A DNA stretch of 64,000 nt from Anthoceros angustus. Taxonomy: Eukaryota > Plantae > Anthocerotophyta. The stretch's first letter is position 1. Every line of letters begins with the position of its first letter. Below the pieces are notes generated by a model. It was not told the DNA's origin. It worked only from the letters and a program-made list of their open reading frames with translations, and ran no database searches. The DNA lies in assembly GCA_010909165.1 (NCBI GenBank), contig MU008169.1:1-64000 (forward strand), given 5' to 3'. The position numbers were made by a program, and so were the translations under genes. This document shows, piece after piece, positions 19,751 to 47,358 of the stretch.

Positions 19751-19755
19751 TACAA

Positions 19756-21040: not shown

Positions 21041-21042
21041 CT

Positions 21043-22377: not shown

Positions 22378-22489
22378 TAGTTCACCCGGGTCGATGAGGA
22401 GGATGTCACACCGGACCCTGCTCAGCATTCACCGCCTCGAACCACCCCTCTGACGTTCCACATGCCATAGGCCACCTCCGGACCAATGG

Positions 22490-23789
22490 TTAGAACCCTA
22501 TTATCAATCCGTCGATTTTGAGCGTCTTGGCTTTGGTGCTATCACAGAATATCCTCCTAACCGAGGAACCCCTATCATGGAAGTGGTTAGAACCCTATTA
22601 TCAATCCGTCGATTTTGAGCGTCTTGGCGATTTTGGTGCTATCTGAATAAACCCCGAGAAGCCCTCCGTGGCCATTGCTCCAAGTGGCGTGCGGTGGAGG
22701 ATGAATACCAATCTACTGCTCAAGAACAAGACCTGCAAATCGCTGACCTCCCACAGACGCCAGCCATCTCTTCCTTCCTCTATGGAGACTGGATGAAGAC
22801 ACATACATGGCACGGCTGAAGGATATGAAGATCTGAACATCCCACCAAAGTGCTTAAAGCGCTCAAGTGTATATATGGACTAAAACAAAGTGGCGAATAT
22901 GCATAAGCTAAGTACCAAGTTCGAGATGAAAGACATCGGAGAACTTAAATCTGTTGGGAGTTCAAATCTTAAAAAGTGCGAGAGGAAGGGCTGCGATAGT
23001 TCACCGACATAAATACATCGGTGATATTTTGCAAGTTCAAACTTGACTAAGCTAGACCCTCAACTACTCCTTTCGCTATGGGCGTGAAACTTACCAGTCT
23101 CGGTACAATCCGGGAAGAACTTAAGGACATGAAGGATGTCCCTGAGACATACAATGGCGATCTAATCTTCTTAGCGAACCTGGACAAGGCGGATATCCGA
23201 TTACTCTGTAAGCCAGTATCACAATTTACGGAGAATCCGGGAAGAACACATTGGGCTGTTGTCATGGATTTTCCGCTATCTCAAAGGAACCCACAATTAT
23301 GGACTCTTCTATCGGAGGAGGGCGGTAGAAACTCACCCTTAGGGGTTCACGATGCCGGTCGGACGGTGATTCAGAAAAGTCTCTCCACATCTTCCTGTTG
23401 TCTTCCATGAATTGGTCGTGTAAAAGCAATCTTCCATAGCCACATCTTCCACAGGCGAGTACAAATCATTGATGATGCTTCAAAGGAGGCTAAATGGGAA
23501 AGGACCTTCCTTCATGACCTCGACGGACCAGACACCTACCCCTATCATGTGTGATAACATGTCGACCTTAGCCCTTGTCGCTAATCCACGCTTTCACGCC
23601 CGCACTAAGCATATAGAAATTCAACATCACTACATTAGAGATGTAGTGGAGCGTGGAGTCGTGAAGGTGGGTTATGTGCACACAGATTCTAACGTCGCAG
23701 ACGTGCTAACGAAAGGATTGGCAAAGCATAAACACTACCCGCATCTTTCAGGGTTAGGCCTGGACGACTATACCAAGTATTTCGGATAA
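22490..23789 (+). pseudogene. Copia B RT (internally deleted) and RNase H
   Basis: IYGLKQSG runs almost directly into KFEMKDIGEL with no YVDD; RNase H CDNMSTLALVANPRFHARTKHIEIQHHYIR; stop at 23787-89. Confidence 0.9.
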
Positions 23790-24214
23790 CTTATGTGTGG
23801 TGGGGTGGGGTGGGAACCCGAAGGTTCCCTTGGGAATTGTGTTGGGTGCAAGCATGCTTTGGTGCCACACTTTTGTGCCATATGGCAAAGTACATTTGGC
23901 TATCTTGTGCTAGAGTATGAATGGTGTGAATATGAATTTTGAACCATTTACTTTTATTTATTTTATCATACTTCTTACCTTATAGTATATATATTTATTA
24001 TTATTATTAGTATGCTCTACTTTAACTTTCTACTTTTTACTTTAACCATAAAACTTAACTTTAGGTAAGTCTAAATCAGCTCACTTTACCCGTTGACAAT
24101 TATGCCCACGTTTCGGACATTGATGCGTCCCACCTCTCTCCCTTCCTCCGATCCTCGCTTCTCCCTTCCTCCTCCTCCTCCTCGCCCGTGTCCGCTTGAG
24201 CTGCTGCTTCTTGC

Positions 24215-24800
24215 CATGGCTCTAGGGAGCACTCATCGTTTAAGGAAGCTCGCAATTTGAGCGGGCCAAGGCTGCAAGATCGGGCTGCCCGATCGCCGAG
24301 AGATACTCCTACCTTGAGGCAAGGTATGGAATTGGCACGTTGGTGATGGGAAGCTCCGCGAGAAAGGCTTGGACGTTCGAAACGACAAGTTTTTGATGGG
24401 TTTGAAGGAGAGATTGGGAGGGCCGGACGTGTTGTCTGATGCCTTTGGCAAGGTATGAAACGAGAACATAGGCTTTGTATGGCAAGGCACAGACACACTC
24501 TCAGCTCAGGAGTGGAGGCACGTAGATGATCTATTATACCACATCTATGGGAAACGCCCAAGCAGGTGCAACTCACAGCGGGTGCCCAGGTCCATGGCCT
24601 TGGGACTTTTGGTAGAGAAAGCGTGCAAATGTGTGGGCAGCCTTCCTTTGAAGGCGGGGCGAAGAAGGAGGCGAAGGAGGCAAAGGAGGCGAAGGGAAGA
24701 ACACTGGGATGGATGAGAAAGAGGTGGAAGTTGAAGAAATGGCGTCGGAGGAGGACAAGGAGGCGATTGCGGCTCTCTCCATAGGGGCCAGCTCAGCCTG
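24215..24800 (+). pseudogene. Accessory ORF-a of C, unknown function (further copies ~25500-26060 and ~26500-27065)
   Basis: Reconstructed frame WNWHVGDGKLREK..LKERLGG..EWRHVDDLLYHIYGKRP..ALGLLVEKKACKCVSWAAF followed by an E/K-rich tail. Confidence 0.55.
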
Positions 24801-27800
24801 TGGCGAATCACTGAGCCGGGCGATTCGCTCCTCATTGTCTCACCTCCTAAGGCTTCTAAAGCCTCTTCTATTCCGGTGATCACGAGGTGGAGCAGGAGTC
24901 GGAGTGGAGGCCGCATTTGGTGGCCGGGCGATTACCGATTCAATGAGCAGCCAAGCTGCGGCGGAAGACTTTAGAGACATCGTCGGCAAAGGTTCGTCTT
25001 CTCGTGCGTGAGGTGTTGCCACTTTACAACATGGGCGGGTATCGGGACTCGACATGGGTGGACGGTTGTCGATGTTGGGGCACACTGTGTGGTGGGGTGG
25101 GGTGGGAACAGAAGGTTCCCTTGGGAATTGTGTTGGGTGCAAGCATGCTTTGGTGCCACACTTTTGTGCCATATGGCAAAGTACATTTGGCTATCTTGTG
25201 CTAGAGTATGAATGGTGTGAATATGAATTTTGAACCATTTACTTTTATTTATTTTATCATACTTCTTACCTTATAGTATATATATTTATTATTATTATTA
25301 GTATGCTCTACTTTAACTTTCTACTTTTTACTTTAACCATAAAACTTAACTTTAGGTAAGTCTAAATCACTCACTTTACCGTTGACAATTATGCCACGTT
25401 TGGACATTGATCGTCCCTCTCTCCCTTCCTCGATCCTCGCTTCTCCCTTCCTCCCCTCCTCCTCCTCGCCCGTGTCCGCTTGAGCTGCGCTTCTTGCCAT
25501 GGCTCTAGGGAGCACTCATCGTTTAAGGCTCGCAATTTGAGCGGCGGGCCAAGGCTGCAAGATCGGGCTGCCATCGATCTTGAGCCGAGAGATACTCCTA
25601 CCTTGGGGCAAGGTATGGAATTGGCACGATGGTGATGGGAAGCTCCGCGAAAAGGCTTGGGCGTTGAAGCGACAAGTTTTGATGGGTTTGAAGGAGAGAT
25701 TGGGAGGGCGGACGTGTCGATGCCTTTGGCAAGGTCTGAAACGAGAACATAGGCTTTGTATGGCAAGGGACACACTCGGCTCGAGTGGAGGCACGTAGAT
25801 GATCTAGTATACCACATCTATGGGAAACGCCCAAGTGGTGCAACTCACGGTGGTGCCCAGTCCATGGCCTTGGGACTTTTGGTAGAGAAGAAAGCGTGCA
25901 AATGTGTGAGCTGGGCAGCCTTCCTTTGAGGCGAAGAAGGAGGCGAAGGAGGCAAAGGAGGCGAAGGGAAGAACACTGGGATGGATGAGAAAGAGGTGGA
26001 AGTTGAAGAAATGGCGTCGGAGGAGGACAAGGAGGCGATTGCGGCTCTCTCCATAGGGGCCCGGCCGGCTACCTGGCGTCCAGGCCGGGCGGCGTTCGCT
26101 CCTCCATGTCTCACCTCCTAAGGCTTCTAAAGCCTCTTCTATTCCGGTGATCACGAGGTGGAGCAGTCGGCGGAGTGGAGGCCGCATTTGGTGGCCGGGC
26201 GGGCGATTACCGATTCAATGAGCAGCCAAGCTGCGGCGGAAGACTTTAGAGACATCGTCGGCAAAGGTTCGTCTTCTCGTGCGTGAGGTGTTGCCACTTT
26301 ACAACATGGGCGGGTATCGGGACTCGACATGGGTGGACGGTTGATGTTGGGGCACTGGCGGTGGTGCTAACCTAGTTGTGGATGCAGGATCTTTGGATAT
26401 ATTGGCTGAAGGATGGGGTGCTAGTGATTTCCTCGATCCTCGCTTCTCCCTTCCTCCCCTCCTCCTCCTCGCCCGTGTCCGCTTGAGCTGCGCTTCTTGC
26501 CATGGCTCTAGGGAGCACTCATCGTTTAAGGCTCGCAATTTGAGCGGCGGGCCAAGGCTGCAAGATCGGGCTGCCATCGATCTTGAGCCGAGAGATACTC
26601 CTACCTTGGGGCAAGGTATGGAATTGGCACGATGGTGATGGGAAGCTCCGCGAAAAGGCTTGGGCGTTGAAGCGACAAGTTTTGATGGGTTTGAAGGAGA
26701 GATTGGGAGGGCGGACGTGTCGATGCCTTTGGCAAGGTCTGAAACGAGAACATAGGCTTTGTATGGCAAGGGACACACTCTCTCGAGAGTGGAGGCACGT
26801 AGATGATCTAGTATACCACATCTATGGGAAACGCCCAAGTGGTGCAACTCACGGTGGTGCCCAGTCCATGGCCTTGGGACTTTTGGTAGAGAAGAAAGCG
26901 TGCAAATGTGTGAGCTGGGCAGCCTTCCTTTGAGGCGAAGAAGGAGGCGAAGGAGGCAAAGGAGGCGAAGGGAAGAACACTGGGATGGATGAGAAAGAGG
27001 TGGAAGTTGAAGAAATGGCGTCGGAGGAGGACAAGGAGGCGATTGCGGCTCTCTCCATAGGGGCCCGGCCGGCTACCTGGCGTCCAGGCCGGGCGGCGTT
27101 CGCTCCTCCATGTCTCACCTCCTAAGGCTTCTAAAGCCTCTTCTATTCCGGTGATCACGAGGTGGAGCAGTCGGCGGAGTGGAGGCCGCATTTGGTGGCC
27201 GGGCGGGCGATTACCGATTCAATGAGCAGCCAAGCTGCGGCGGAAGACTTTAGAGACATCGTCGGCAAAGGTTCGTCTTCTCAGGGGTGCGTGAGGTGTT
27301 GCCACTTTACAACATGGGCGGGGTATCGGGACTCGACATGGGTGGACGGTTGCTGATGTTGGGGCACCTGTGGCGGTGGTGCTAACCTAGTTGTGGATGC
27401 AGGATGCTGGATATATTGGCTGAAGGATGGGGGTGCTAGTGATTTCCTGCTGATGTATGGGTGCTGGTGGTATGGGTTGCTTGTAATGTTGCTTGTAATG
27501 TGGGTGCTGGTGCACGCTTCTTTTCTTGCTCTCCGCTAGAGGCCGCTCGGTGATTTCGTGCGCTTGGGGGGGTAGTGGCTCTGATTTTGTTCCTCTTATG
27601 CCGCCCATCTTGGAGGTGCTTTCCTATTTTGAGGTGATGCCCACCTTCTTATTCTAGTGTTCTAATCGTGGTGTAAGGGCTTGGTGATCGCGCTTCTTTT
27701 TTGCTCTCTCCATAGGGCTGAGCTCGCCTGTGACGAGGTCACAGAGGGCGACTGCTTCTCGCTCCTCCCTCACCTCCTAAGGCTTCTAAAGCCTCTTCTA

Positions 27801-30800
27801 TTCCGTGATCACGAGGTGGAGCAGGAGTCGGGGAGTGGAGGCCGCATTTGGTGACGCGGAGCCACGATTCCAATGAGCAGCCAACGCGGAAGACTTTAGA
27901 GACATCGTCGGCAAAGGTTCGTCTTCTCGTCTGCGTGAGGTGTTGCCACTTTACAACATGGGCGGGTATCGGGACTCGACATGGGTGGACGCGATGTTGG
28001 GGCACCCGTGCGGTGGTGCTAACCTAGTTGTGGATGCAGGATCTTTGGATATATTGGCTGAAGGATGGGGGTGCTAGTGATTTCCTGCTGATGTATGGGT
28101 GCTGGTGGTATGGGTTGCTTGTAATGTTGCTTGTAATGTGGGTGCTGGTGCACGCTTCTTTTGGCGCACTGCTCTCCCGCTAGAGGCCAGCTTGTGTTCG
28201 CCGAACGGTGTGATTTCGTGCGCTTGGCTGGGGCCGTGGCCTGCTGATTTTGTTCCTCTTATGCCGCCCATCTTGGACAGTGCTTTCCTATTTTGAGGCT
28301 GATGCCCACCTTCTTATTCTAGTGTTCTAATCCGTCGTGGCTGTAAGGGCTTGGTGATGCGCGCTTCTTTTTGCTACCGCTCCCCTCAAGGCATGGTTTT
28401 CAATCGTGATTTTGTGCACTTATGGGGGGCCCGTTGTTTTCGTTGCTCTTGTGCCGCCCATCTTTGACAGGGCTCACCTCTTTCCAGGCTGATGTCCTGC
28501 TGTTTATTCTAGCGTTCTAGCTGTTGTTATCTGACGGTGTTGGTGGTGCCGGTGGTAATCTTCTGGCACTCGTGGATGTTGGATTTAAGCTAATTCGTCG
28601 TGATCGGTGCTAACCTAGTGGTGGATGCGAGGTTGAATAGATTTCTGCGCATCGGTCTTGGCGATTTCCTGGCGATGTATGGGTCTTGGTGATATGGGTT
28701 GGCTGCGATGTTCTTTGGTAACTTTGGATCTTTGATGCGCTGCTAGCGTTCATTTCGATCGTCGTCATCTTCCAGTTCTACGATCGTCGGATCTGTAAGG
28801 GCTTGGTGCATCGTATGCCCATGTGTGGCTACCGAATTTAAGCATAGGTGGTGGGCTCAAGGGGTGCTAGTTGTCTAACGTTGCTTGGATCGATTTCCTC
28901 TTGGCTCTTATCCCACTTCATCTCGCGTGCATAAATCGGTGGGGTGTTAGTGGTTGGTGCAAGCGGGTGCAACTCGCTCATCTTTGTATGATGGTGCTAA
29001 GGTCTCGTCGATCTTGGTTGTCTTTGGATCTTTGTTATGGTGTACTCGTGCTGTTGCCATCTGTTCTTCTAGAAGGTTCTTTGGGAGGTAGGCGGTGAAG
29101 GGTTCGGTCACTTAAGAGTTTTGGTATGTCTGGCTCTACATATGTTGTGAAACACGGATGCTATTGGTTTTGGTTTTCAATAGATGGGATCTTGCGGATG
29201 CCTCCGAAGCCGTTTTTCATCTTTCCAAGTTTCCATCCTTGGTTTTGGTTTTCAATAGATGGGATCTTTGATGCCTCCGGAAGCCGTTTTTCATCTGCTC
29301 CAAGTTTCCATCCTTGGTTTTCGCCACCGGAAGGCGTGGTAAGCGGATCCGTCGTGTGTAAGGGCTTGGTGATCGCGCTTCTTTTTGCTACTGCTCTCCG
29401 TGAAGGCCGGCATGGTTTTCAGGCTGTGATTTTGTGCACTTAGTGGGCCGGGGCCGTTGTTTTCGTTGCTCTTGTCTTGACAGGCTCACCTGTTTCCGGT
29501 GATGTCCTGCTGTTTATTCTAGCGTTCTAGCTGTTGTTATCTGCTGACGGTGTTGGTGGTGCCGGTGGTAATCTTCTGGCACTGGTGGATGTTGGATTTA
29601 AGCTAATTCGTCGTGATCTGGTGCTAACCTAGTGGTGGATGCAGGAGGTTGAATAGATTTGCTGCAGGCATCAGGTGCTGGCGATTTCCTGCTGATGTAT
29701 GGGTGCTGGTGATATGGGTTGGCTGCGATGTTCTTTGGTAACACGGATCTTGCTGCGCTAGCGTTCTTCTGATCGTCGTCATCTTCGGCGTTCTGATCGT
29801 CGGATCATAAGGGCTTGGTGCATGCGTATGTGGCTACCGAATTTAAGCATAGGTGGTGGCTGCGAAGGGGTGCTAGTTGTCTAACGTTGCTTGGATCGAT
29901 TTCCTCTGTTGGGGCTCTTATCCCACTTCATCTCGCATGATGCATATCGGTGGGGTGTGGTTGGTGCAACTGCAACTCTGCTCATGTATGATGGTGCTAA
30001 GGTCTCGTCTTGATCTTGGTTGTCTTGTGGATCTTTGTTATGGTGTACTCGTGCTGTTGCCATCTGTTCTTCTAGAAGGTTCTTTGGAGGTAGGCGTGAA
30101 GGGTTCGGTCACTTAAGAGTTTTGGTATATACTGCTGGCTCTACATATGTTGTGAAACATGCTATTGGTTTTGGTTTTCAATAGATGGGATCTTGCGGAT
30201 GCCTCGAAGCCGTTTTTCATCTTGCTCAAGTTTCCATCCTTGGTTTTCGCCACGGAAGGCGTGGTAAGCGGATCCGTCGAGTTAGTTCTCCTTGGTGACC
30301 CGGGCATTGAAGGGTGCACAGTCACGGTTGTTGTCCACGGTCTAGGTCGGTTTGGTACCCTTGTATTAGAGGACCATTAGTCATATCCGCCTTTTGTGTG
30401 TTCATATACGCACTTGTGTGTTTTGTGTTCAATGTTTCTTCATGAGTCTCACTTGTGGCGGTTGCCCCATCGTCCATGTGTGAAAATATATCCATGGCGG
30501 AGTTGTGCTACTTGCACACCTCCTAAGGCTTCTAAAGCCTCTTCTATTCCAGGTGATCACGAGGTGGAACGGGAGTCGACAGGAGTGGAGGCCGCATTTG
30601 GTGACGCCGGGGCAGAGCGACACGATTCCAATGAGCAGCCAACTGCAGCGGAAGACTTTAGAGACATCGTCGGCAAAGGTTCGTCTTCTCAGGGCTGCGT
30701 GAGGTGTTGCCACTTTACAACATGGGCGGGGTATCGGGACTCGACATGGGTGGACGGTTGCTGATGTTGGGGCACCTGTGGCGGTGGTGCTAACCTAGTT

Positions 30801-33800
30801 GTGGATGCAGGATGCTGGATATATTGGCTGAAGGATGGGGGTGCTAGTGATTTCCTGCTGATGTATGGGTGCTGGTGGTATGGGTTGCTTGTAATGTTGC
30901 TTGTAATGTGGGTGCTGGTGCACGCTTCTTTTTGCGCATTGCTCTCCCGCTAGAGGCCAGCTTGTGTTCGCCGAACTGTGTGATTTCGTGCGCTTGGGGC
31001 CGTGGCACTGATTTTGTTCCTCTTATGCCCATCTTGGGTGCTTTCCTATTTTGAGGCCGATGCCCACCTTCTTATTCTAGTGTTCTAATCCGTCGTAAGG
31101 GCTTGGTGATCGCGCTTCTTTTTGCTCTCCGTGAAGGCCGGCATGGTTTCTAATCGTGTGATTTTGTGCACTATCGGGCCGGGCCCGTTGTTTTCGTTGT
31201 TTTGCCGCCCATCTTCGGCTGTGGCTCACCTGTTTCCGGTGATGTCCTGCTGTTTATTCTAGCGTTCTAGCCGTTGTTATCACCGACGGTTGGTGGTGCC
31301 GGTGGTAATCTTCGCACGGTGGATGTTGGATTTAAGCTAATTCGTCGTGATCTGGTGCTAACCTAGTGGTGGATGCAGGAGGTTGAATAGATTTGCTGCA
31401 GGCATCGTGTCGATTTCGGCGATGTATGGTGCCGGTGATATGGGTTGGCTGCGATGTTCTTTGGTAACTTTGGATCTTTGTGCGCTGCCAGCGTCCTGCT
31501 CAGCGTCCATCTTCCAGTTTCTACCGTCGGATCTGTAAGGGCTTGGTGCATGCGTATGCCCATGTGTGGCTACCGAATTTAAGCATAGGTGGTGGTCATG
31601 AAGTTGTCTAACGTTGCTTGGATCGATTTCTCGTGCTCTTATCCCACTTCATCTCGCAGTGCATAAATCGGTGGGGTGTTAGTGGTGCAAGCGGGTGCAA
31701 CTCGCTCATCGTATGATGGTGCTAAGGTCTTGAGGCTGGTTGTACCGTGGATGTTATGGTGTACTCGTGCTTGCCATCTGCTCTTCTAGAAGGTTCCGGG
31801 AGGTAGGCGTGAAGGGTTCGGTCACTTAAGAGTTTTGGTATGTCCGCTGGCTCTACATATGTTGTGAAACACGGATGCTATTGGTTTTGGTTTTCAATAG
31901 ATGGGATCTTGCGGATGCCTCGGAAGCCGCTTTTTCATGCCGCCCAAGTTTCCATCCTTGGTTTTCGCCACCGGAAGGCGTGGTAAGCGGATCCGTGTGT
32001 TAGTTCTCCTTGGTGACCAGTGCATTGAAGGGTGCCCGTCACGCTTGTTGTCCGCTGCGCCTAGGCCGTTTGGTACCCTTGTATTAGAGGACCATTAGTC
32101 ATATCCGCCTTTTGTGTGTTCATGTACGCACTTGTGTGTTTTGTGTTCAATGTTTCTTCATGAGTCTCACTTGTGGCGGTTGCCCCATCGTCCATGTGTG
32201 AAAATATATTAGGCGGAGTTGTGCTACTTGCACACCTCCTGCTTTGCTGGTCACTAGGCCACCGACCAATTACCCATATCGGACGATCGTTTGGTTCGTT
32301 GACCCTTGGTCATGATGGATGGTGATCACTTTACCTGTGGACATTGATCCGGGTTCGAACTTGGTGAACAATTTGTACATTCTAATGGGTTCCTTATTTC
32401 CGGACCATGCTTGGCAAGCGCTTGACGTGGCCACAAAAGTGAAGGGGAGCTTGCATTGCTCCTTGCACAAGCCGAGGAAGAGGAGGCATTGTCTACAAAG
32501 GCGTTTGCGAGCAAAATAAGTTGAATGACTCGGTTGGTTTTCGACTTTGTGATTGCTCGTGTCGTGGCGGCGTCATCTCGACCGGTTTGTAATTGTGCGG
32601 AGATCACCTCTTGTGCCCAACAATGTACTTGACCACTACTTATTAACGTCTTTGGGCGATTTGAGTGCAGTAGGATGCTGTTGCTCGTGTGAAAGAGCAA
32701 GCGCAAGTGGTGGATGCAGGAGGTTGAATAGATTTGCTGCAGCATCGTGCCGGGCGATTTCGCGATGTATGGGTGCTGGTGATATGGGTTGGTCGATGTT
32801 GCGGTAACCCGATGCCGGTGCGCGCAGCTGCCCAGGTTCTCGCCGTCATCTTCCAGTTCTCTGATCGTCGGATCTGTAAGGGCTTGGTGCATCGTATGCC
32901 CATGTGTGGCTACCGAATTTAAGCATAGGTGGTGGTCAAGGGGGTGCTAGTTGTCTAACCTTGCTTGGATCTGATTTCCTCTGTTCAGGCTCTTATCCCA
33001 CTTCATCTCGCAGCGTGCATAAATCGGTGGGGTGTTAGTGGTTGGTGCAAGCTGGTGCAACTCTGCTCATGCTGTATGATGGTGCTAAGGTCTCGGTGCT
33101 GATGCTGGTTGTACTGTGGATGCTGTTATGGTGTACTCTGGTGCCTGTTGCCATCTGTTCTTCTAGAAGGTTGCTGGGAGGTAGGCAGTGAAGGGTTCGG
33201 TCACTTAAGAGTTTTGGTATGTCTGCCTGGCTCTACATATGTTGTGAAACCTGGATGCTATTGGTTTTTTTGGGTTTTCAATAGATGGGATCTTGCGGAT
33301 GCCTCCGAAGCCGTTTTTCATGCCGCTCCAAGTTTCCATCCTTGGTTTTCGCCACCGGAAGGCGTGGTAAGCGGATCCGTCGAGTTAGTTCTCCTTGGTG
33401 ACCCGGGCATTGAAGGGTGCACAGTCACGGTTGTTGTCCGCCGCACGCCTAGGCCGGTTTGGTACCCTTGTATTAGAGGACCATTAGTCATATCCGCCTT
33501 TTGTGTGTTCATGTACGCACTTGTGTGTTTTGTGTTCAATGTTTCTTCATGAGTCTCACTTGTGGCGGTTGCCCCATCGTCCATGTGTGAAAATATATCC
33601 ACGGGCGGAGTTGTGCTACTTGCACACCTCCCTGTTTTGCTGGTCACTAGGCCACTGACCAATTACCCATATCGGACGATCGTTTGGTTCGTTGACCGGT
33701 TGGTCATCGATGACCGTGGTGATCACTTTACCACCGTGTGGACATTGATCCGGGTTGGAACTTGGTGAACAATTTGTACATTCTAACGGGTTCCTTGTTT

Positions 33801-35039
33801 CCAGACCATGCTTGGCAAACGCTTGACGTGGCCACAAAAGTGAAGGGGGAGCTTGCATTGCTCCTTGCACAAGCCGCTGAGGAAGAGGAGGCATTGTCTG
33901 CAAAGGCGTTTGCAGAGCAAAATAAGTTGACGGCAGCTCGGTTGGCTGTTTCTGACTTTGTGATTGCTCGTGTCGCTGGCGGCGTCATCTCGACCCACTG
34001 GTTTGTAATTGTGCGGAGATCACCTCTTGTGCCCAACAATGTACAGTTGACCACTACTTATTAACGTCTTTGGGCGATTTGAGTAGCCGAGGATGCCGCT
34101 CGTGTGAAAGAGCAAGCGCAAGTGGTGGCACAGTGAAAGTGCCCTTCTAGCCCTCCGGAAAAAGCATGAGGTGCTAGATCAAAGGTGTAGTGTAGTCCAT
34201 GAGTACCATGGAAACCTTTGCCGATTGTATAACCTCGTTGAAGAAGCGACTGTGCCACAATGGGTTCCTGCTCCTTCGCGATGAGGCCAAATGGGCCTCT
34301 TCAAATAACCCTTTGTTACATGTGTGGCTACCGAATTTAAGCATAGGTGGTGGTCATGAAGTTGTCTAACGTTGCTTGGATCGATTTCTCGTGCTCTTAT
34401 CCCACTTCATCTCGCAGTGCATAAATCGGTGGGGTGTTAGTGGTTGGTGCAAGCGGGTGCAACTCGCTCATCGTATGATGGTGCTAAGGTCTCGGTCTTG
34501 ATCTTGGTTGTACCGTGGATGTTATGGTGTACTCGTGCTGTTGCCATCTGCTCTTCTAGAAGGTTCTTTGGGAGGTAGGCGTGAAGGGTTCGGTCACTTA
34601 AGAGTTTTGGTATGTCCGCTGGCTCTACATATGTTGTGAAACACGGATGCTATTGGTTTTGGTTTTCAATAGATGGGATCTTGCGGATGCCTCCGAAGCC
34701 GTTTTTCATGCCGCCCAAGTTTCCATCCTTGGTTTTCGCCACCGGAAGGCGTGGTAAGCGGATCCGTCGAGTTAGTTCTCCTTGGTGACCCGGGCATTGA
34801 AGGGTGCACAGTCACGGTTGTTGTCCGCTGCGCCTAGGCCGTTTGGTACCCTTGTATTAGAGGACCATTAGTCATATCTGCCCCCTTTTGTGTGTTCATG
34901 TACGCACTTGTGTGTTTTGTGTTCAATGTTTCTTCATGAGTCTCACTTGTGGCAGTTTGCCCCATCGTCCATGTGTGAAAATATATCCACAGTGGCGGAG
35001 TTGTGCTACTTGCACACCTCCCTGTTTTGCTGGTCACTA

Positions 35040-35733
35040 GGCCACTGACCAATTACCCATATCGGACAGTCGTTTGGTTCGTTGACCAGTTGGTCACTGA
35101 TGACCGTGGTGATCACTTTACCACTGTGTGGACATTGATCCGGGTTGGAACTTGGTGAACAATTTGTACATTCTAATGGGTTCCTTGTTTCCAGACCATG
35201 CTTGGCAAACGCTTGACGTGGCCACAAAAGTGAAGGGGAGCTTGCATTGCTCCTTGCACAAGCCGAGGAAGAGGAGGCATTGTCTACAAAGGCGTTTGCG
35301 AGCAAAATAAGTTGACGGCAGCCGGTTATCGCTTTCGACTTTGTGATTGCTCGTGTCGTGGCGGCGTCATCTCGACCACGGTTTGTAATTGTGCGGAGAT
35401 CACCTCTTGTGCCCAACAACACGCTGACCACTACTTATTAACGTCTTTGGGCGATTTGAGTACGGGCGAGATGCCGTTGCTCGTGTGAAAGAGCAGCGCA
35501 AGTGGTGGCACAGTGAAAGTGCCCTTCTAGCCCTCCAAAAGCATGAGGTGCTAGATCAAAGGTGTAGTGTAGTCCATGAGTACCATGGAAACCTTTGCCG
35601 ATTGTATAACTCGTTGAAGAAGCGACTGTGCCACAATGGGTTCCTGCTCCTTCGCGAGGCCAAATGGGCCTCTTCAAATAACCCTTTGTTACGTGTGTGG
35701 GAGGTTAGTGCTACTTTTCGTGTGAAACCTTGA
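35040..35733 (+). pseudogene. Coiled-coil accessory ORF-b of C (other copies ~32250-32700 and ~33650-34320)
   Basis: DIDPGWNLVNNLYIL..ELALLLAQAAEEEEALSAK..ESALLALQKHEVLDQRCSVVHEYHGNLCRLYNSLKKRL..; stop at 35733. Confidence 0.5.
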
Positions 35734-35903
35734 TGTTCTTGTTGTTGTTCTAAGATGTACCATGTAAATGTCTTTGTGTGTTCGGTGGTTTGCATGCAAC
35801 GATTTTGTTTTCCTCCCATGTGGGCATAGCTTCCATGATGCTGTCTTTTTCGAGCATTCCACTCCATGTCATCGCCTAGAGTAGGCAGGCAAGTTCCTCC
35901 ACA

Positions 35904-37560
35904 ATGGTGAAAGCCAAAGGGTGGCCTTTACGAGTGCGGTTAATTGGAACCGGCTAGACCCGGGAGCTAGAGTGGACAGAGTACCATCAAGCTGAATGAC
36001 TTCAAGCAATTGGAAGACCGCTTTGAAAGATGGTATAGGGTATGTGGGTCTGGAATTGAAGCCATCTTCCCAGTGCAGCTAGAAAACTTCTCCAAGACTC
36101 TCTGGTGAGTGCACACCGCCAAAATTGTGTTTATGCTCAAGTTCGTACCACATCACATGCCCATCAATTGTTGTGGTTTCTCCTCAGAGTTATAGTCGCC
36201 TTCCCCAATGTCTCCGATTGTTCCCACTCTTGGGGACACTCATGTTTAGAAAACCCCACCTCGGACAATGCGGCCATCACGCTGCTCGCTCCGCCACCGT
36301 GCAACCTTCTGGTGATCACGATGTAATTATGTGCTTCAAACGCCGGACCTGGTTGTGCCAAGAGCAGAGGGCCAATTGTAGTCAAGATGATGTCCGCACC
36401 AGCAATAGTGTGACCCGGTACTTTGCTTTGACCCGGTAGCGAACCGGTGGGCTGTGCGATGGAGCACCGGATCATGCAACATCTTTGTTAATTGGCACAA
36501 CGGAGGTGGGTGAGTTGCCCAAGGAGCTTCCTCCTTTAGAGGAGTGGTTAACGAGGCCATTCAGCATCGAAGGCGCGGTGTGCCCCAAGTGCAGTCGCGG
36601 TGGGAACTCCGTGGTAGAAAGTCCGAATCCTAAAGGCGTAATGGAGGGTCCTAGTGCGAAGTGCCATTGCAAAGTGAGCAGTGGCTGTGTACATGTTGTT
36701 GCGACCCTCGCGATGGATGTGCAAGCAGGCCCTCACGACCAAAATGTCACGGGAGGACAATGTGGTGCACCCAATGGCCCTCGGTGCATGGATGAGGGTT
36801 TGTCAATTGTCACTGGAATGGCAGTTGCTGGTGAACTGGCCACACATGAGGAAGTGGCCCCTAGCACGGGGGATGAAATGGCCACGGCAGTTGAGTGTGA
36901 AGTGGTCATACCGAACACCTCGGAATTGTCACTGCAGCCCAAGGCCCACCGGATCAACTCCAGGTCATCGTGCAGGCAGCCTCCAGGGAGTTGGGTGAGG
37001 CAGAGGAACAGAAGCGGCAAACTAGGCAGAAAGCAAAGGGGAAGCAGGAGCCGAGGCCGGGGCCTCTGAAACGGAAAGGTGGCAAGTCACGAGGACAGGG
37101 GCGGCCAGGAAGATTCGAGCGGCAGTGGAACGTTTGGAACGTCCAGATGATGTCGCAGATGGAGCTACGAATTTAGGTCTTGGAGACACTTTCATGGTAC
37201 TTGCTCCACATGGCAATGCAGGCGTGTCTCATTCTATTTGTTGAAAGCCTTATGCGGACTGAAGTGTTACAAGCAGATTATGTTGACCCTGCTTGGGGAT
37301 GTGAGAAGTTTGACATGGGGGACATAGTTGTGAGGGCTGTGTACTATGAAGTGATGCCTGGAGAACAGGCTGTGTACCAATTGCTAGACAGTGGTGATCG
37401 TGGTGTCCCAACAATGATGCAACGTGACATGGTGCTGGCGTGCAAAATCCCGTTGGATCCAGTGGCCCGTGTGAAGGAGCCCAAGAACTCGGTATAGCTA
37501 TATTGGCTTGCCCCCGAAATTCGGAAGTACCTGGAGCAGGTGGCCCAGGATGCTAGGTGA
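35904..37560 (+). CDS. Accessory gene of C: SWIM-type zinc finger plus a C-terminal domain paralogous to the transposase C-terminus
   Basis: Exon 1 from ATG 35904 to donor GTGAGT 36105; CHCKVSSGCVHVVATL (CxCx5CxH) at ~36662-36705; LGDTFMVL..GDIVVRAVYYE..VLACKIPL at ~37155-37500; frameshifts present. Confidence 0.6.
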
Positions 37561-37985
37561 ATTAGAACTGTTGGTGAGCCTCTTTCATTTTCTATGTCTT
37601 GTGCACTTGCTGCGGTGGACCTCCATGTCTTTCTTTGGTGGGCTGCTTTCATTCAATGCCTTGCTCATTGCGAGTTGCTATGTGTTTGGCTCCTTGGCGG
37701 GACCTATTGTGGAGAGACTTGCTACCAGACAAGCTCTCCAATATCTTGGATGGTGGCTTGTTGCATGTGCGTGGACACACTGGTTAAGTTATCAGACTTT
37801 GTGTGAGTGATCATTGACATATAAGATTGCAAAGGCATGCTGCACATGTGCATGCCAGTGTGTTTGTAAGAGATTTTATTTTGTCTTATCACACTCCTTT
37901 ATACTGGATGACATGAAGCGGGCGAGAACACCAAAATGGGTGGACTGTGACGTTCACAGTACACAAGGCGCTTATGCCAAATCGT

Positions 37986-38118
37986 CCGGGCTTGTGCGTC
38001 GTGTGTCTATGTAGACACCTCAAAGCCAAAGCGACCGGGCTTGTGCGTCGTGCGTCTATGGAGACACCCCAAACCCAAAGCATCCGGGCTTGTGCATCGT
38101 GGGTCTATGGAGACACCT
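37986..38118. repeat. 49-bp tandem repeat x3
   Basis: CCGGGCTTGTGC..GTCTATG.AGACACC at 37986, 38035 and 38084. Confidence 0.9.
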
Positions 38119-41100
38119 CTAGCGAATTGTCGAAATGGCGGAGGCCACGGTGCCATGGCGCGCCCAAGCTAGGAGTCAAACCTTGAATCCATTTCCTGCG
38201 GTGAATTGATTACTGATTGCACACATGATGCCCCTAAGAGAATGGAACATTTGGTGAGTGCACAAGTGAGGACGCACACCTCCTCCTAATCATCAAACAT
38301 CATTCGATTGTGTACATTTGTGCCAATGAAGGGCTCCATCTTCAATAGGCGTTGCCCTCGATCGATGGTGAGCCACCTTCTCCGTCGCAAGAGTCGTCCA
38401 CCTGGGTGTTCAAACACAGGCTGGCCGTTGTGAGTGCATTCGGATCTCCTTGGCATGGTATGGATGAAGTCGCTGCCCGGTTCTGGTATGGCGCCATCCA
38501 GAGCTTGTGCATCCCAAGCCGATCGCCGTGCCCGAGCACGTTCCATGCGCAGCAAGAACTTCGCAGACGCTTCAAAAAGGGGGGATTCAGCAATGGCGGC
38601 CACCAAGCTAGCGCTCGGTGGCTGCTCCCACCTCCATACCATTATGCAAACCACCCTCAAGCACCACAGCAGGGGCCTCAAGAACAAGGAATGCTAGTGC
38701 AGGCGCCTCCATGTCTGAAGCGAGAGCAGGAGGCGGGAGCCGGGTGCCGGGGAATGAAAAGGTGATAGAGGAGGTGGGTGGCTACAGGCCTTATGTTGTG
38801 CGATTACGGGGACGTGTGCAAAGGGCCACAGGAAGGGTATGACTTGGCCAAGATCATTAGATGTCGAAGACTTAGTAATGACCACATCCGGGGAAAGCGT
38901 GATCAATGAATTGTCTTTTTCTGTCCGTGTGTGGAATGCCTAGTGCTCACCGAATCCATTTGCCGAAGACATCATGTGTGCACAGTGCATTAAATTAGCA
39001 TGTGGTAGATGAGAAGTACAAAGGGACCCGGTGGAATGTAGTGCACATTCGTCCAAAACACTAAGGGTTGATACTCGAATCACGAAAGCTCTCTTCCACA
39101 ACTGTAGTCACAACAAGTTGTGCTTGAGTGAGGTGTAGATTCCACTTCTTCTCTCGGTGGTGCCATGTCAAACTTGCATGCTTGGACAAATTCAGTAAGA
39201 TGCAATCATGGAGATCCAAGGGCAAGCTGTAGACAAACCCGGCCACGTCCTTCTGCAACTGGTAGTAATGACCAACCACCACCTCCTCCCTAGATTGGTA
39301 GTTTGTATCGCTCCAGGGGCAGTGTCTGGACACTCTCACCTTGTGCTTTGCTTCCGTGCAACGGAGGAGGTAGAAGTCCTGCCCTTCGTCTTCTGGGTCT
39401 GCAAACACAAGGAAATTGTCGCCAACTTCCAATATATCAGCCAGGTGAGACACGTCAACAACATCCTCATCTTCACGATCGCCCAATGCAGTGACCCTCC
39501 ACCATTCTTGCTGCTGGTTGCATGCCTGTAATTCGAGCAACCTGTATCGCATGAGGTCCGATCGTAACACGCTTCCAATATCCGGTGAGGGACCGTGGGA
39601 CAATCGGCATGGTTGCTCTCAAGGCACTCAAGGCATGCATGCCAAGCTCCGCATCCTCAAGCTGCGTAGGGTCATCCACATTGCAACCATACAGCTATGC
39701 ATCAACTTAGAGCACGGAATGGGGTCACATGCATGCTTGTTCCTCCTGTTCACCTCATTTTTCCCTATCAGCCAAAAACTCCTATGCACGCCATGTTCTC
39801 CAGATGCATAGGAGGTTGATGCGCCACCTGAGATGTTGTTGCAAAGGTACTCCACCACATCTTGAGCATTCTGCAGCCAACCAGCTGTTGGAGAGGACTC
39901 GGCTGCACGAAGAGCTCGCTTCAGGATTGCACCAACACCGTCATGTTCTCCCTTACCGTGCCCACTACCAAAATATGACCAAAGCATGTTACACCCTCCC
40001 GTGAGGCTTGGATGCGAGCAATGAAGTAGCTTGGTCGACATGCCTTGAATTGGCTTGCCCCATCGACCAGCACGGTGTTCCAGGTAGTGGGAATCCGAAT
40101 CCTGCATCCAGCGCCATTGATGCAGCAAACAATGTTGCACAAAAGAGTGTCATGAACCATATCGTCACTAATATAAAATGGTAATACTTCTCTATGGTTG
40201 ATGAAGGGTCTTCGCATCAAGAGGGCCATTGCGAAAACACGAGAACCGGAATGGATACAGTCGCTTTTGCGGTGCATAGATTGGATTTTGTTACGCACGC
40301 CAAAGCATAGTTCGCGAAAAGTCCATCACGATACTACAACATCTTGGGAAACCATTCTAGGCCTTTGCGAACTCTATCCCTTGCCAGCGCTGAACAAAAT
40401 CATGGAGCACAAACTCCTTCAGCTTGATCTTCAGGTGCTCCACAAACTCTGATGGGTGTGTTTCCATGAAGACTAACTTGATGCGATTTTTATCATGGCC
40501 ATCTGAATCTTTGCCAACAACTTGGTACTGAAAACATCGCCACTTGAGAACAGAGTCAGGTTGGATAGTTGCATCTACCTCCGATGGACAAAAGGCAAGT
40601 GTACTAACACCACACGAACAAGTTCCTTGCAAGCATGCAAGAGCATGCCAATCAAGATCTGGTTCCTTTGCACAAAGGACACGCTCACAAAGCACCCTCA
40701 CGGCGGCAAGCGGGAAGCATTACATGCAAGATCCGATGACCCTAAAGGAGGATTACAAACAAGGCAAGAGCATTCCACGGTGGCCACGGGTGAACCACGA
40801 AACCGTTCCCCTAAGGCCATTGAAAGCATCCTTTAGGAATGCCATCTCAACATGGTACCTACAACAGCATAGATTGCGCTCTTGTAGGCTCTTTACATAG
40901 AAGGGCTTCAATTTCTCGAATGTACGCTGGCCTACTTGAATATCAGGGTGTTCATGACAGAAGCGAAGGTAGAATTCCGTCTGCACATGGTAGCATCGTA
41001 TGAATCAGTGCGGCTGAATGTATACACAACCCTATGTGTCCGAGCCAACAAGCTTAAGGTACCAAAAGGCAAGACAAGTGGACACATGCCCAAGTTACCA

Positions 41101-41264
41101 GATGACCCAAAAACGGTGGCAAAGGCCCGTGGCAAAGAACGTGACCAAGTGTACATGACCAGGAAGCCACATGCTCATCCAAAAAAGAGGTTGCTCAATA
41201 CAATCATCCTTGGGCATGGACAAAGGGACGGTGAGGGTGACAACTCGGCCACACATGTGCAACC

Positions 41265-41480
41265 GAGTGAAGCGACCATGTGACCACCAAGTCAAGCAAC
41301 CATGTGACCAGAGTGAAGCAACCTTGTGACCACAGGGTCAAGCAACCATGTGCCCACTGGGTCAAGCAACCATGTGACCATAAGGAATGGGAACTTGTGG
41401 TCACCCAGGGTTGCCCCGTGGCCGTCGCCGCTGGCCACAATTGTGGCCAATGAGTCCACCAACCACGTGACCACAAGCAC
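41265..41480. repeat. Intronic motif array AAGCAACCATGTGACCA (second copy 42698-42860)
   Basis: Several closely spaced copies of CAACCATGTGACCA and GTGACCAC. Confidence 0.85.
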
Positions 41481-44058
41481 TACTTGTGGTCACCATGGGG
41501 TGACACAATGTGGCAAGAGGCCCACAGACCAATCTTGTGGTCTCAGGCGCAGGTGGCCATCCGAGCAGCTGGTGAGCACATGGGAAGACCACAATAAGTC
41601 AATGGCACCAAACATCCACAATGGCACAATGTATACGGTACATCGAGCTGCATAAATAGCAACCACCATGTACATCACCCTTATGTGAGACAACATCAAC
41701 GGCGTTTGCACCAAGCATGCATTCGTCTTCCTTGAATGCCTCACACGGACATGAAAGCAAACATCGAACAACGAATTCTCATAAAAACACGAGCGGAGGA
41801 AAACAATAATCCAGCTGCACGACTGGAGACATCACTCAAACATCACCAATAGCGGACTCACCAATCACCACATCACAAACAACATGTCCACCACAACTAC
41901 GCAGATAAAACCGAAGAATGAAAGATCAACTGAGACATATCAAGGAAGTGAGTGATATGCTTGGTAAACGTCTTTGGAGCCGTTCTCAACCGTTTTGTGT
42001 CCTTTGTGTTTGATGAGGGAAGCAAGCTCGAGCGCACAATCGTCCTTGACATACCCAAACAATGTCATTCCGTGTCTTCCTACCGCACCACACCATGACC
42101 ACAATTCACCACGTTCATGCCCTTGCCGAGAGTTTAGTGCGATATAGCGCCTCCTCGACTCCTATCTGCCGAGACGAGAGGACACCGGATGGCTTCCATG
42201 GATGTCCTCCCGAATGATGTTGAATAGTGTGTTCACGGCCTCGGGTGGTCTCCAAATTGCACATCCTTTAGACGTGTACATGCATCCTTCACATTCTTCA
42301 ATATCAAGGCGCAAGGTGGCTATCCTTTGTAGTCATGCAATATCTGACGGTACTCCTTTAGCAATGGCAAGTGGCCAAAAGTGCCAAGATGTCCTTCCGC
42401 ATGATGATGTGTACGCAGAGGTGAGGGACAAAAAATGTTGCCCAAGTTGGCGAGCTACTCGTTGTTTTACGGAGAGAGCACTCGACTCCCCACAGGCGCC
42501 ATAGCCCGCTCGGCTCTCCACTTTGGACGCTTTACATGACCGTTTTGCCAGCCACCACCCTCATGTCTCCTCCCTCGCGAGCATCTAGCCCTTGTTGTTC
42601 ATCTTCCTCCTCGATAACCCGCACCCGGATGTTTGCGGATGCATTGTTTGGGCTGCTTTTCCCTCGACGCCTTCCCATGCTCGGGCTTGGTGAAGCAACC
42701 TTGTGACCACGGTGGTGCAACCATGTGGAGTCAAGCAACCATGTGACCATAAGGAATGGGAACTTGTGGTCACCAGTTGCCCGTGGCCGTCGCCACAATT
42801 GTGGCCAATGAGTCCACCAACCATGTGACCACAAGCACTACTTGTCACCATGGGTGACACAATGTGGCAAGAGGCCCTGAGACCAATCTTGTGGTCTCAG
42901 CGCAGTGGCCATGGTGAGCACATGGGAAGACCACAATAAGTCAATGGCACCAGACATCCACAATGGCACGGCAATGCGGTGTCAGCTGCATAAATAGCAA
43001 CCACCATGTACATCACCCTTACGTGAGAGCCATCAAGCGTTTGCACCAAGCATGCATTCGTCTTCCTTGAATGCCTCACACGGACATGAAAGCAAACATC
43101 GAACAACGAATTCTCATAAAAACAACAGGAGAGAAAACAATAACGATCCAGCGTACGAACCTGGAGACATCACTCAAACATCACCAATAGCCAGACCTGT
43201 CACCAATCACCACATCACAAACAACATGTCCACCACAACTACGCAGATAAAACCGGAAGAATGAAAGATCAACCTGAGACATATCAAGGAAGTGAGTGAT
43301 ATGCTTGGTAAACGTCTTTGGAGCTGTTCTCAACCGTTTTGTGTCCTTTGTGTTTGATGAGGGGCGCGAAGCAAGCTCCCAGAACTGCACAATGCTGTCC
43401 TTGACATACCCTGAAACAATGTCATTCCGTGTCTTCCTACCTGCACCACACCATGACCACAATTCACCACGTTCATGCCCTTGCCGAGAGTTTAGTGCGC
43501 GATATAGCTGCCTCCTACTGACTCCTATCTGCCGAGACAGAGAGGACACCAGATGGCTTCCATGGATGTCCTCCCGAATGATGTTGAATAGTGTGTTCAC
43601 GGCCTCGGGTGGTCTCCAAATTGCACATCCTTTAGACGTGTACATGCATCCTTCACATTCTTCAATATCAAGGCGCAAGGTGGCTATCCTTTGTAGTCAT
43701 GCAATATCTGACGGTACTCCTTTAGCAATGGCAAGTGGCCAAAAGTGCCAAGATGTCCTTCCGCATGATGATGTGTACGCAGGTGAGGGACAAAAAATGT
43801 TGCCCAAGTTGGCGAGCTACTCGTTGTTTTACGGAGAGAGCACTCGACTCCCCACAGGCGCCATAGCCCGCTCAGCTCTCCACTTTGGACGCTTTACATG
43901 ACCGTTTTGCCAGCCACCACCCTCATGTCTCCTCCCTCGCGAGCATCTAGCCCTTGTTGTTCATCTTCCTCCTCGATAACCCGCACCCGGATGTTTGCGG
44001 ATGCATTGTTTGGGCTGCTTTTCCCTCGACGCCTTCCCATGCTCGGGCTTGGTGAAGC
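41314..44058. repeat. ~1.37 kb tandem duplication in the C transposase
   Basis: Junction microhomology GTGAAGCA at ~41313, ~42690 and ~44051. Confidence 0.9.
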
Positions 44059-44982
44059 AGGCCATGCCACAATACCATCATCGGCATGCTCGCTCGCCCT
44101 CATGACTCGCACTTTACCAAAAGGCTTGAGTTAAGAGCGACACAAGCACCCATTAACAAGGCCCCACACGATACACGAATGGCACGATGGCATTACCTCC
44201 ACCGCCAAGATCCGCTTCTTGCAGTTACCACCGACACATCACCGCAAGCTTGAAAAGCGTTACGACGCATCGGCGAAGCGTAACGCGCCAATATCCTAGC
44301 AAACCTAGCATACCGCATCAACCACCGGATCGGTCTGACTCATCATCCACAGTGCACTAGCATCAACATCCATCCGGCCGAAACTGGCGATCTCCTCCAC
44401 TCCGGTGGCGGATCCGGTGAATCTTGGTTTGGTTGCAACATAGTGTGGCTGCGGAGAGCAACCACGCCAGTTCTTGGTGTCATCACCCACAAGTTCCTAC
44501 TCCTTCTCCACATCGGACAAATGACAAGTGCACAAGTCCGCTCATGTCACCGACCTTTCTTTGGGCGTGAGTCCCCAACCACCGATTTCCTCGGCCTTGG
44601 CGGTTTTGAGGTTGACTTGTTAATGCGAGTTGAGCGGTGGTACGCAACCCGATCCACTAGGTAAATAATCCAATTCAAATTCCGCCATAAACCGGCCAGC
44701 CATGGCGTTCATCACAATTGTGGCTAAATGAACTTTGTGTCTGGACAAACCCGTCGAGTGAACTCAACATTTTGTTTATGTGAAATAGATATTTTAATAA
44801 TCTATATATTTTTATATATTAACGCCAAATACAAAAACTCCTGTGCTATAAGCTGTAAAAAAATTAGATACATCCGGGACGATATGAATTACATATATTT
44901 ATATGAACATAGAGAGGACAAATTAAGAGTGTTTCGTCCGTTCCTCACTTAAGTGAGCACCAAAGCATGCTTGCACCCTGTT

Positions 44983-45866: not shown

Positions 45867-47358
45867 TGCCAGAGCATCGTGTGTGTTGGTTGTGCAGAAT
45901 GTTGGGAGGCTATATTGACGGAATGTGTGGCTCCTACTTTAACTGACAAGCGGTAGAGACCATCGTCTAAGATGCCAGTGCAGATATTGTGTGTTCTATT
46001 CTTGAGGTAGGAAAGGAAACAGCTATCTGCATATAAAAGGACACATGTTGTGTTCTTTGCAAAGACTAGTGGCGGACACTAGGTTTTTGCACATGGCAGG
46101 AACATGGAGGACTTGGTGAAGATGAAGAGTCTGACCTGAATCACATCTGAGTACAACAGAACCTAGGCCGGCTATGGGAAGGTTATGATCATCGCCCAGG
46201 AGAACAATCGGATGTCCTGTGGCTGGGGTGTATGACTCGAAGGAGTCTTTGTTGTAGCAGATATGTGATGTTGCTCCACTGTCCAGGTACCAATAAGCGG
46301 TGGCCGGCTTCGAGGAGGCAAGGCAAATAGTGAGCACACGTGTTGTTGAGGAAGAGTGTTTCTTCGAAGCAACATGAGCGGCAGGCGGGGCCTCTGATCT
46401 TGGTTCCCCATTCTTTTTCTTTCTACAGTCCTTTTCCATGTGATTAGGAATTCTGCACCATTTACAAATAATTCCACTCTTTTTGTTACCCCTGGAAGGT
46501 GTGGAAAAGCTGGATTCGCCATGAGATTTGTTTGGTGTGGAATAAGCAAGTCTATTGGAAAGAGAACTTTTGCCGCGTCCTCTTCCTCTGCCTCTTCCAG
46601 CGTACATCACCTGCTGTCGGTTGGACTTGGGCTCATGGCGTCGACTGGACTCCTGCTAAATCATGGCTCCGATGAGTTCGGCGACACTGATGTCGAGGTT
46701 GTCGTCTGCATCGAAGCCGCCCGAATTCTTTTGGGCTTGTCGAACCACAGCGTTCTGTGTGGTGAGAAATGGTCTGTAGGAGGGTGGGAGGGATATCAAG
46801 AGAACAAGGAATGCAACAAGTTCGGAAACGGAGGTGTTGGTGGCAGCTTCATATTGAGATCTAGCTTGCTGGAAAGTGTTGATATGGTGTTCGACAGTCA
46901 GATTCCTTCATCTTTAGATTGAAGAGGTTGCGCATCGCGGTCATCATACTCATCACATCTCTTGAAGAATATAATTGAGCAAGGTGATCCCACATCTGTT
47001 TAGAAGTTTTTGCTTGACTGCATTGTCTTACCATGTTCAGTGCTAGTCCACTGATCAGGAGGTCTTGAGCTTTTTCATCCCTGGCGTCCCAGGTTTCTTT
47101 GCTCTCGGAGCCCCATTGTGGTCTGGGTGTGGACCCACTTACAACGTCCCATAGATCTCGATTGCGGAAAAGTGCACGCATTCGCAAGCGCCAAACGTCG
47201 TACGCCTGCCCATTGAATCGTCCTTCTCCTTAAAACTGTCACCATAGTTGTGATTCACCACGGAAGGTCGTACTTCATCTTTGGGTGGATCCTTCCTCTC
47301 CTCTCTCTCTCGTCATGTTGTTGTTTCTCCTCTCGTTCGTCCACGTCGGAACCAGCCA
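45867..47358 (-). pseudogene. Copia A gag, zinc knuckle and protease
   Basis: FNGQAYDVWRLRMRALFRNRDLWDVVSG; CKWCRIPNHMEKDC; WYLDSGATSHIC. Confidence 0.92.

Follow-up and report, generated by a model that had tools for sequence, protein, structure and literature searches.

A Sola2-type DNA transposon in Anthoceros angustus with a spliced transposase gene and probable remnants of a convergent companion gene

What kind of mobile element occupies positions 23,844 to 44,978 of contig MU008169.1 of Anthoceros angustus (Anthocerotophyta; NCBI GenBank assembly GCA_010909165.1), how long is it really, and how many genes does it carry? In a reading of the first 64,000 nucleotides of this contig (forward strand; this whole stretch is hereafter called the window), the segment had been described as a giant, multi-gene, Sola-like DNA transposon with at least three accessory coding regions and a layout comparable to that of VANDAL or CACTA elements (hereafter the original prediction). 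Our analysis indicates that it is a bounded transposon of Sola2 type with terminal inverted repeats (TIRs). Our best explanation of the locus as a whole, to which we assign a probability of about 0.78, is a single Sola2-type insertion with two convergent genes, the assembled length of which has been inflated by duplications and the true size of which would be approximately 11 kb.

The termini of the element are exactly those of the original prediction. The 22-bp TIR, GGGTGCAAGCATGCTTTGGTGC, which starts with GGGTGC, is perfect at both ends, and TGTT lies immediately outside either end as a 4-bp target-site duplication (TSD; Table 1). Four copies of the TIR occur in the window at three or fewer mismatches, compared with 0.01 expected from shuffled sequences; the two additional ones are a second left end at 25135-25156 and a variant with two mismatches on the minus strand at 7246-7267. 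When the four termini are aligned, partial complementarity extends up to ca. 34 bp. The RNase H end of a Ty1/copia pol gene is found 57 bp upstream of the insertion site, and our reading is that a Sola2-type DDD transposon of the cut-and-paste kind inserted once into the 3' portion of this Ty1/copia element. By analogy with other DDD/DDE elements, the transposase would bind the 22-bp inverted ends, cut the element out and reinsert it, and reinsertion at a 4-bp staggered cut would generate the TGTT duplication. An empty paralogous site was not found in the 64-kb window. Fragments of Ty1/copia pol genes flank the insertion on both sides (46026-46655 and 19266-19757, both on the minus strand; Pfam Pol_BBD and rve), and its neighbourhood is a nest of copia elements.

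The prediction of a spliced DDD transposase gene on the minus strand was also borne out. One GT...CAG intron separates its two exons: exon 1 ends in ...LDMSQ at position 43274, where GT follows, and exon 2 begins with TEFYL at 40980, directly after CAG. The joined reading, ...LDMSQ/TEFYLRFC, fits the corresponding sequence of relatives (P0140, ...DLTQTELYLKFC), and a second element in the window (see below) has the same exon junction. The pieces of minus-strand open reading frames (ORFs) between 41004 and 39064 are collinear with residues 52-622 of P0140, a relative of 721 aa, and the core of exon 2 contains the motifs MDFS, ISDD, VDGASQFK, and GHGKGEHDG. A 173-aa piece of the transposase retrieved 232 relatives by HMMER, mostly fragments, among them proteins of Klebsormidium nitens and K. 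subtile, and a further protein search added one partial hypothetical protein of Taxus chinensis. Word-index protein searches yielded few matches and no informative names, and did not reach the dictyostelid Sola2 proteins.

In an alignment of 33 relatives, D223, F224, N227, D315, Q320, and H357-G358-K359 are invariant and D280 and D363 nearly so. The AlphaFold model of an intact transposase from a related metagenome locus, L009 (predicted local distance difference test score, pLDDT, 81.8), has the RNase H succession of strands and helices: strand 1 carries D223, D315 comes after strand 4, and D363 is on the helix that follows, all three at canonical positions. Foldseek searches with this model gave nucleases and transposases of the RNase H fold (NurA, PIWI, RNase H1, Metnase, IstA), with weak E-values. 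For the C-terminal domain, Foldseek pointed to the BAH domains of polybromo (1w4s; E=0.04, probability 0.87) and EBS (5z8n; E=0.13, probability 0.96), without support from Pfam.

Sola2 was described by Bao, Jurka and Kapitonov (2009), whose work is cited and illustrated in PMC3627910. The RNase-H-like domains of Sola transposases lack any similarity to Pfam families (PMC5751038), and Pfam likewise returned no family for the transposase pieces of the window or for full-length relatives; a sequence search of the PDB with the transposase profile returned nothing either. The blocks printed for Sola2_DFa-2 and Sola2_PPa-1 comprise a Cys motif, DFKEN, WSDGAKHFKS or WCDNARHFKS, and YHGKSDVD or YHGKSECD (PMC3627910, supplement). 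Compared by eye with these printed sequences, without a formal alignment, the proteins studied here have the Cys motif, DFxEN, SDGxxxQFK, and GHGKGEHD in the same order. A 4-bp TSD is also a feature of Sola2 (PMC3627910), so that a DDD core of RNase H fold, the shared motifs, and a TSD of this length are all three found here, together with short TIRs. Because of the motif blocks in the same order, the 4-bp TSD and the lack of a Pfam match, we file the element under Sola2. The bounded Sola2-type transposon of the original prediction thus stands, since ends, TSD, DDD core, and motif blocks (the latter judged by eye) agree.

Which genes does such an element carry in addition to the transposase? 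A scan of JGI metagenomes provided 80 loci with transposase relatives, many with intact ORFs of 560-1,600 aa, and clustering of the flanking ORFs brought out a gene, here called the companion, that recurs in the region downstream and is encoded on the strand opposite to the transposase. It is present, intact or decayed, in 14 of the 30 metagenome loci with at least 3 kb of sequence downstream of the transposase, always on the opposite strand and with its finger end toward the transposase. In the relatives, the protein opens with a conserved N-terminal domain of ca. 110 aa and continues through an acidic linker to a coiled coil; a Cys/His finger with the pattern C-x2-C ... C-x-H-x2-H-x2-C ... 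C-x4-C is encoded by a later exon. The best Pfam matches of this finger are RING families (E=2e-4 for locus L047, E=0.01 for L004, and E=0.006, to zf-RING_11, for the window), all under the curated cut-offs. The N-terminal domain is confidently modeled (pLDDT 81) as a small alpha/beta fold, for which no structural match was obtained (Foldseek E-values above 2; best VIA Z, 3.1). An anti-silencing fold, considered as a candidate for this domain, was not adopted; VANC21 (9lnk) reached only Z 2.3, at rank 18 among unrelated rows. In view of the RING-like finger and the conserved linkage, the companion may be an E3-ligase-type or zinc-binding partner that aids transposition or acts on a host factor. 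The L009 contig encodes an intact transposase of 639 aa (L009:2434-4350:+) that is convergent with an intact first exon of a companion of 568 aa (L009:7029-8732:-).

Probable remnants of this gene occur on the plus strand of the Anthoceros element (Table 1), where their strand, order, and position correspond to those in the relatives, i.e., within the TIRs and convergent with the transposase. The three best window matches of the profile of the N-terminal domain are three duplicate copies of one segment, all on the plus strand. At 24459-24876, the domain is followed, in another frame, by an acidic stretch, the same order as in the relatives, and the ORF at 26544-26930 aligns at all six invariant columns of A2. 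The finger at 35768-35881 has a disrupted first Cys pair and is followed by a stop. A scan of the window for the RING-H2 pattern gave only repeat-borne strings, which were discarded. The block at 27100-35700 presumably holds the linker and the coiled-coil region of the companion. In a quick tree, in which the rows of the window transposases fill only 16-18% of the alignment columns, the two window transposases fall in a clade (Shimodaira-Hasegawa-like approximate likelihood ratio test 99) with loci L003, L004, L009, L016, and L022, and the companion is present in four of these five, the flank of L016 being too short to tell. We therefore consider that, in place of three genes, the plus strand probably contains the remnants of a single companion gene that the duplications have multiplied; this conclusion shares the probability of the overall explanation, of which it is a part. 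The family would accordingly carry two convergent genes, the transposase and the companion. The cargo-carrying lineage of the original prediction is retained in so far as a second gene is carried, whereas its three accessory genes are not.

The length of the element has to be revised as well. Of its 21,135 bp as assembled, 9,746 bp are copies of sequence found earlier in the element, so that 11,389 bp are non-redundant. Comparison of the window with itself revealed many head-to-tail duplications of 0.2-1.4 kb with ca. 88-98% identity, in each of which the start of the second copy and the end of the first are only a few bases apart. Of 12 such pairs in the window, six are located beyond the ends of the element, in unrelated repeats (6942-8648, 10864-11797, 50615-51342, 52160-54459, 56926-57318, and 60158-60740; identities of 91-97%, differences rich in insertions or deletions, hereafter indels); they look like a general weakness of the assembly over this stretch, which will inflate and frameshift whatever feature is read from it. 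All nine pairs that were aligned show more gap events than substitutions, the differences being mainly indels of 1-6 bp, a pattern typical of long-read error and not of old duplicates. Copied along in the duplicate at 25086-26355 are the left TIR, the TGTT, and 50 bp from outside the element (flank-to-TIR part 25086-25156; TIR 25135-25156), and within the first copy of the 1.37-kb duplication, transposase exon 1 recurs in frameshifted form at 41900-42332. The frame of exon 1 is open at 43696-43184 and shifted at 42332-41900; that of the N-terminal domain of the companion is open at 26544-26930 and shifted at 24459-24713. The indel excess, the copied host flank and TIR, the same kind of pairs outside the element, and the retention of one frame per pair indicate that the duplications are most likely assembly artefacts, in which error-rich long-read sequence would have been joined without merging. 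A true length of approximately 11 kb forms part of the overall explanation and carries its probability. The original prediction had foreseen shrinkage to 12-14 kb upon collapsing the duplications; the shrinkage was confirmed, but the computed 11,389 bp falls slightly below that range. The term "giant" finds no support, since about half of the 21 kb is duplication that resembles an assembly artefact.

The alternatives concern the duplications, the number of genes, and the superfamily. If the internal duplications were real, i.e., true tandem arrays in an element of truly ca. 21 kb, this would fit the observation that internal repeat arrays are common in large DNA transposons, and the units between 27 and 35.7 kb indeed differ by up to 14% in a complex, staggered arrangement. 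However, exactly abutting duplications of the same kind are found in unrelated sequence outside the element, one duplication takes in host flank and TIR, the copies differ predominantly by indels of 1-6 bp, and a reading frame is kept in one copy of a pair and lost in the other; real arrays therefore seem unlikely to us. Even less weight should be given to a giant (12-21 kb) Sola-like element with three or more separate accessory genes, an undescribed multi-gene system in the manner of VANDAL/CACTA. The element is bounded and long, it contains many plus-strand ORFs, and one of these (37177-37494) shows a weak similarity to the latter half of the C-terminal domain of the transposase (profile E=0.016, third best in the window; BLASTP E=3). 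Yet the ORFs of the block from 24 to 35.7 kb are copies of one another; Pfam gave nothing above threshold for the 30 ORF pieces of the element, no ORF outside the transposase on either strand having a domain; and the accessory ORFs match neither the second element nor, by tblastn, any of 81 related loci, none of which contains a companion-side copy of the transposase C-terminal domain. For the 209-aa ORF, an Atlas search gave nothing and the recognition score was low, and the relatives show one companion gene, not three. The "at least three plus-strand accessory coding regions" of the original prediction are thus better described as mutual copies and one companion in remnants. A SWIM finger in ORF 36440-37066 finds no support, since no Pfam family matched at E up to 1; a CxC...CxH string is all that can be recognized by eye.

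At the other extreme, the companion-like matches might have arisen by chance, and the element might be a Sola2 transposon with a single gene and a long arm devoid of coding sequence. The E-values of the remnants, only 1e-3 to 6e-3 against 2,617 fragments, the finger without its first Cys pair, and the undetected coiled coil are in line with this idea, but the best matches of both companion profiles fall within the element and on its plus strand, the N-terminal domain preceding the finger, and the window transposases group with companion-bearing loci, which renders such a coincidence improbable. The poorest candidate in our opinion is a transposase from another or unnamed DDD/DDE superfamily that merely resembles Sola2. 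The comparison with reference Sola2 proteins was informal and Sola2_PPa-1 lacks the second motif block (SDD), but in both published Sola2 proteins DFxEN, (S/C)D(G/N)xxxFKS, and HGKxxxD, together with the preceding Cys motif, follow one another in the same order and at comparable distances. The TSD is 4 bp long, and no Pfam transposase family matches. Several observations do weigh against the explanation that we prefer, a single two-gene Sola2-type insertion of ca. 11 kb. The Sola2 match rests on motifs recognized by eye rather than on a profile or a tree of Sola1, Sola2, and Sola3; the artefact status of the duplications was deduced from their pattern and not from reads; and long unbroken ORFs nearby, such as a copia integrase of 473 aa, indicate that indel errors are not uniform. 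The companion was not seen in 16 of the 30 loci, every Pfam RING match stays below its curated cut-off, the remnants in the window are weak, with only 43 aa aligned by BLASTP, and the coiled coil was not detected in the window with the full-length companion profile. Furthermore, both diverged elements shift frame at the same Glu codon of the catalytic DFxEN (40300-40325 and 4345-4365, both on the minus strand), where a CG lies beside a T run, and random error does not explain such a shared frameshift. It might stem from systematic miscalling of bases at methylated CG, from a mutational hot spot, or from a lesion that both elements inherited from a common ancestor.

The transposase gene of the element is interrupted by at least three in-frame stops and at least four frameshifts. 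Frameshifts by themselves are no proof of decay, because the assembly is indel-rich. With these stops and frameshifts, and with a companion that is detectable only as remnants, the window copy, as read from its sequence, cannot move by itself, and it is a poor copy of its family.

The second element in the window, a diverged member of the same lineage, bears out another part of the original prediction; its TIR differs at 2 of the 22 positions. The two elements share only the coding sequence of the transposase (66-69% nucleotide identity) and a terminus of ca. 120 bp. A tandem repeat with a unit of ca. 60 nt is located at 2046-2813, within the second element (1-7267). The coordinates of all features are compiled in Table 1.

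Table 1. Positions of the features of the Sola2-type element, its insertion site, and the second element in the window.
Feature	Position	Strand	Evidence or remark
Right part of second, diverged element: transposase (3222-5659), TIR with 2 mismatches (7246-7267)	3222-7267	-	Left end beyond window start
Ty1/copia pol, host of insertion	20956-23786	+	Pfam rve, gag_pre-integrs, SH3_retrovirus on 20956-22374; C-terminal pol sequence read
Left TSD, TGTT	23840-23843		Direct read; same as 44979-44982
Left TIR, 22 bp, starts GGG	23844-23865	+	Perfect reverse complement of 44957-44978
Putative companion N-terminal domain, copy 1 (24459-24713), then acidic stretch in another frame (24652-24876)	24459-24876	+	Profile E=0.56, among three best window matches
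Head-to-tail duplicate of 23794-25083	25086-26355	+	92.6% identity; 37 gap events vs. 23 substitutions
Putative companion N-terminal domain, further copy	25541-25926	+	Profile E=0.006 at 25753-25926
Putative companion N-terminal domain, best-kept copy, unbroken 129-aa ORF	26544-26930	+	Profile E=0.04; BLASTP to L009 companion E=4e-4 over 43 aa
Staggered duplication block, units of 0.6-1.7 kb, 86-93% identity	27100-35700	+	Self-comparison; no Pfam domain; ORFs match only each other
Putative degenerate RING-like finger	35768-35881	+	tblastn with L049 finger exon E=2e-4; RING-exon profile, best window match, E=0.0011; zf-RING_11 E=0.006, below cut-off
ORFs earlier taken for SWIM-finger accessory gene	36083-37807	+	Unsupported; no match in loci or rest of window
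49-bp tandem repeat, 2.9 copies, spacer between two genes	37976-38119		
Transposase exon 2: CCC-YHV motif, DDD core, Cys motif, BAH-like C-terminal domain	39064-40980	-	Collinearity with P0140; HMMER; C-terminal profile E=1e-11
Transposase intron, GT...CAG	40981-43273	-	2,293 nt assembled; ca. 0.95 kb without 1.37-kb duplication
First copy of 1.37-kb duplication (second 42690-44059)	41313-42697		92.7% identity; 41 gap events vs. 16 substitutions
Transposase exon 1, N-terminal region	43274-43696	-	Matches in L006, L007, L009, L010; Pfam HTH_8 only E=0.06
Right TIR	44957-44978	-	Perfect match to left TIR
Right TSD, TGTT	44979-44982		Direct read

The related loci yielded some further observations. 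No convincing complete element with TIR and TSD was found in the 81 related loci, and no relative of the transposase in the viral collection. An intact relative of 775 aa (L001:163-2487:+; JBEVXV010001172.1) lies on a 6.3-kb contig of a metagenome-assembled genome labeled Sedimenticola sp.; since it is the single match among 185,579 bacterial and archaeal genomes, it probably represents eukaryotic contamination of the bin. Distant relatives from marine and other metagenomes (L028:1915-6735:+, L055:1468-5316:+, and L038:603-4025:+) are single ORFs of 1,100-1,600 aa, compared with ca. 650 aa for the plant type, and probably have extra domains fused to a Sola2-like core.

Sola is listed among the eight superfamilies of DNA transposons identified in plants; the angiosperm genomes that have been analysed lack it (PMC9804982). 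Dictyostelid Sola2 elements are 10-15 kb long and have Fanzor1 as a second gene (PMC3627910). The novelty that the original prediction had seen in a superfamily of simple single-ORF elements, mostly outside land plants, accordingly disappears, as both plant Sola elements and two-gene Sola2 elements have been reported (PMC9804982; PMC3627910), and an extra gene is not new for Sola2, because the Sola2-Fanzor1 elements have been published. Those chimeras (DFa-1/2/3 and PPa-1/4/5; PMC3627910) likewise have a second protein-coding gene within their TIRs, but it is the TnpB-like Fanzor1, which varies between families, whereas the companion described here is RING-like, is kept across diverged families, and is always convergent with the transposase. 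The element of A. angustus further differs from the dictyostelid ones in its plant host, in its second gene, which encodes a RING-like coiled-coil protein, and in its TSD, TGTT as opposed to their AT-rich TSDs. Its transposase ends in a BAH-like domain. In the literature searched, we found no paper in which Sola2 occurs together with a RING finger.

PIF/Harbinger (ORF1 and transposase), CACTA/En-Spm (TnpA and TnpD), and VANDAL elements (with VANC) combine a transposase with a second, family-specific protein. The likeness of the element studied here to these three is one of layout only, no relation in sequence or fold having been found and VANC21 reaching only Z 2.3 against the N-terminal domain of the companion; of the comparison with VANDAL and CACTA made in the original prediction, the similar layout holds, and none of the analyses showed a shared function.

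Sola2 is little studied; no solved structure or tested activity was found. The window contributes exact ends, which are absent from the metagenome contigs, and its TIRs and TSD place both genes inside the mobile unit, whereas the L009 contig provides a better experimental template than the window copy. For work on this assembly, which inflates and frameshifts repeats at this locus, any apparent "giant" element or "dead" gene in this stretch should be treated with caution. The retention of the companion across diverged families suggests a two-protein mechanism. As a tentative idea, which we think may well fail, a streptophyte clade of Sola2 ranging from mosses or algae to Anthoceros angustus would need an element-encoded RING-like coiled-coil protein, and, taken jointly with this and equally speculative, that protein might be part of the transposition machinery or a ubiquitin-ligase-type weapon against silencing by the host. 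If this is true, Sola2 would be another two-component transposon system of plants, alongside PIF/Harbinger, CACTA, and VANDAL.

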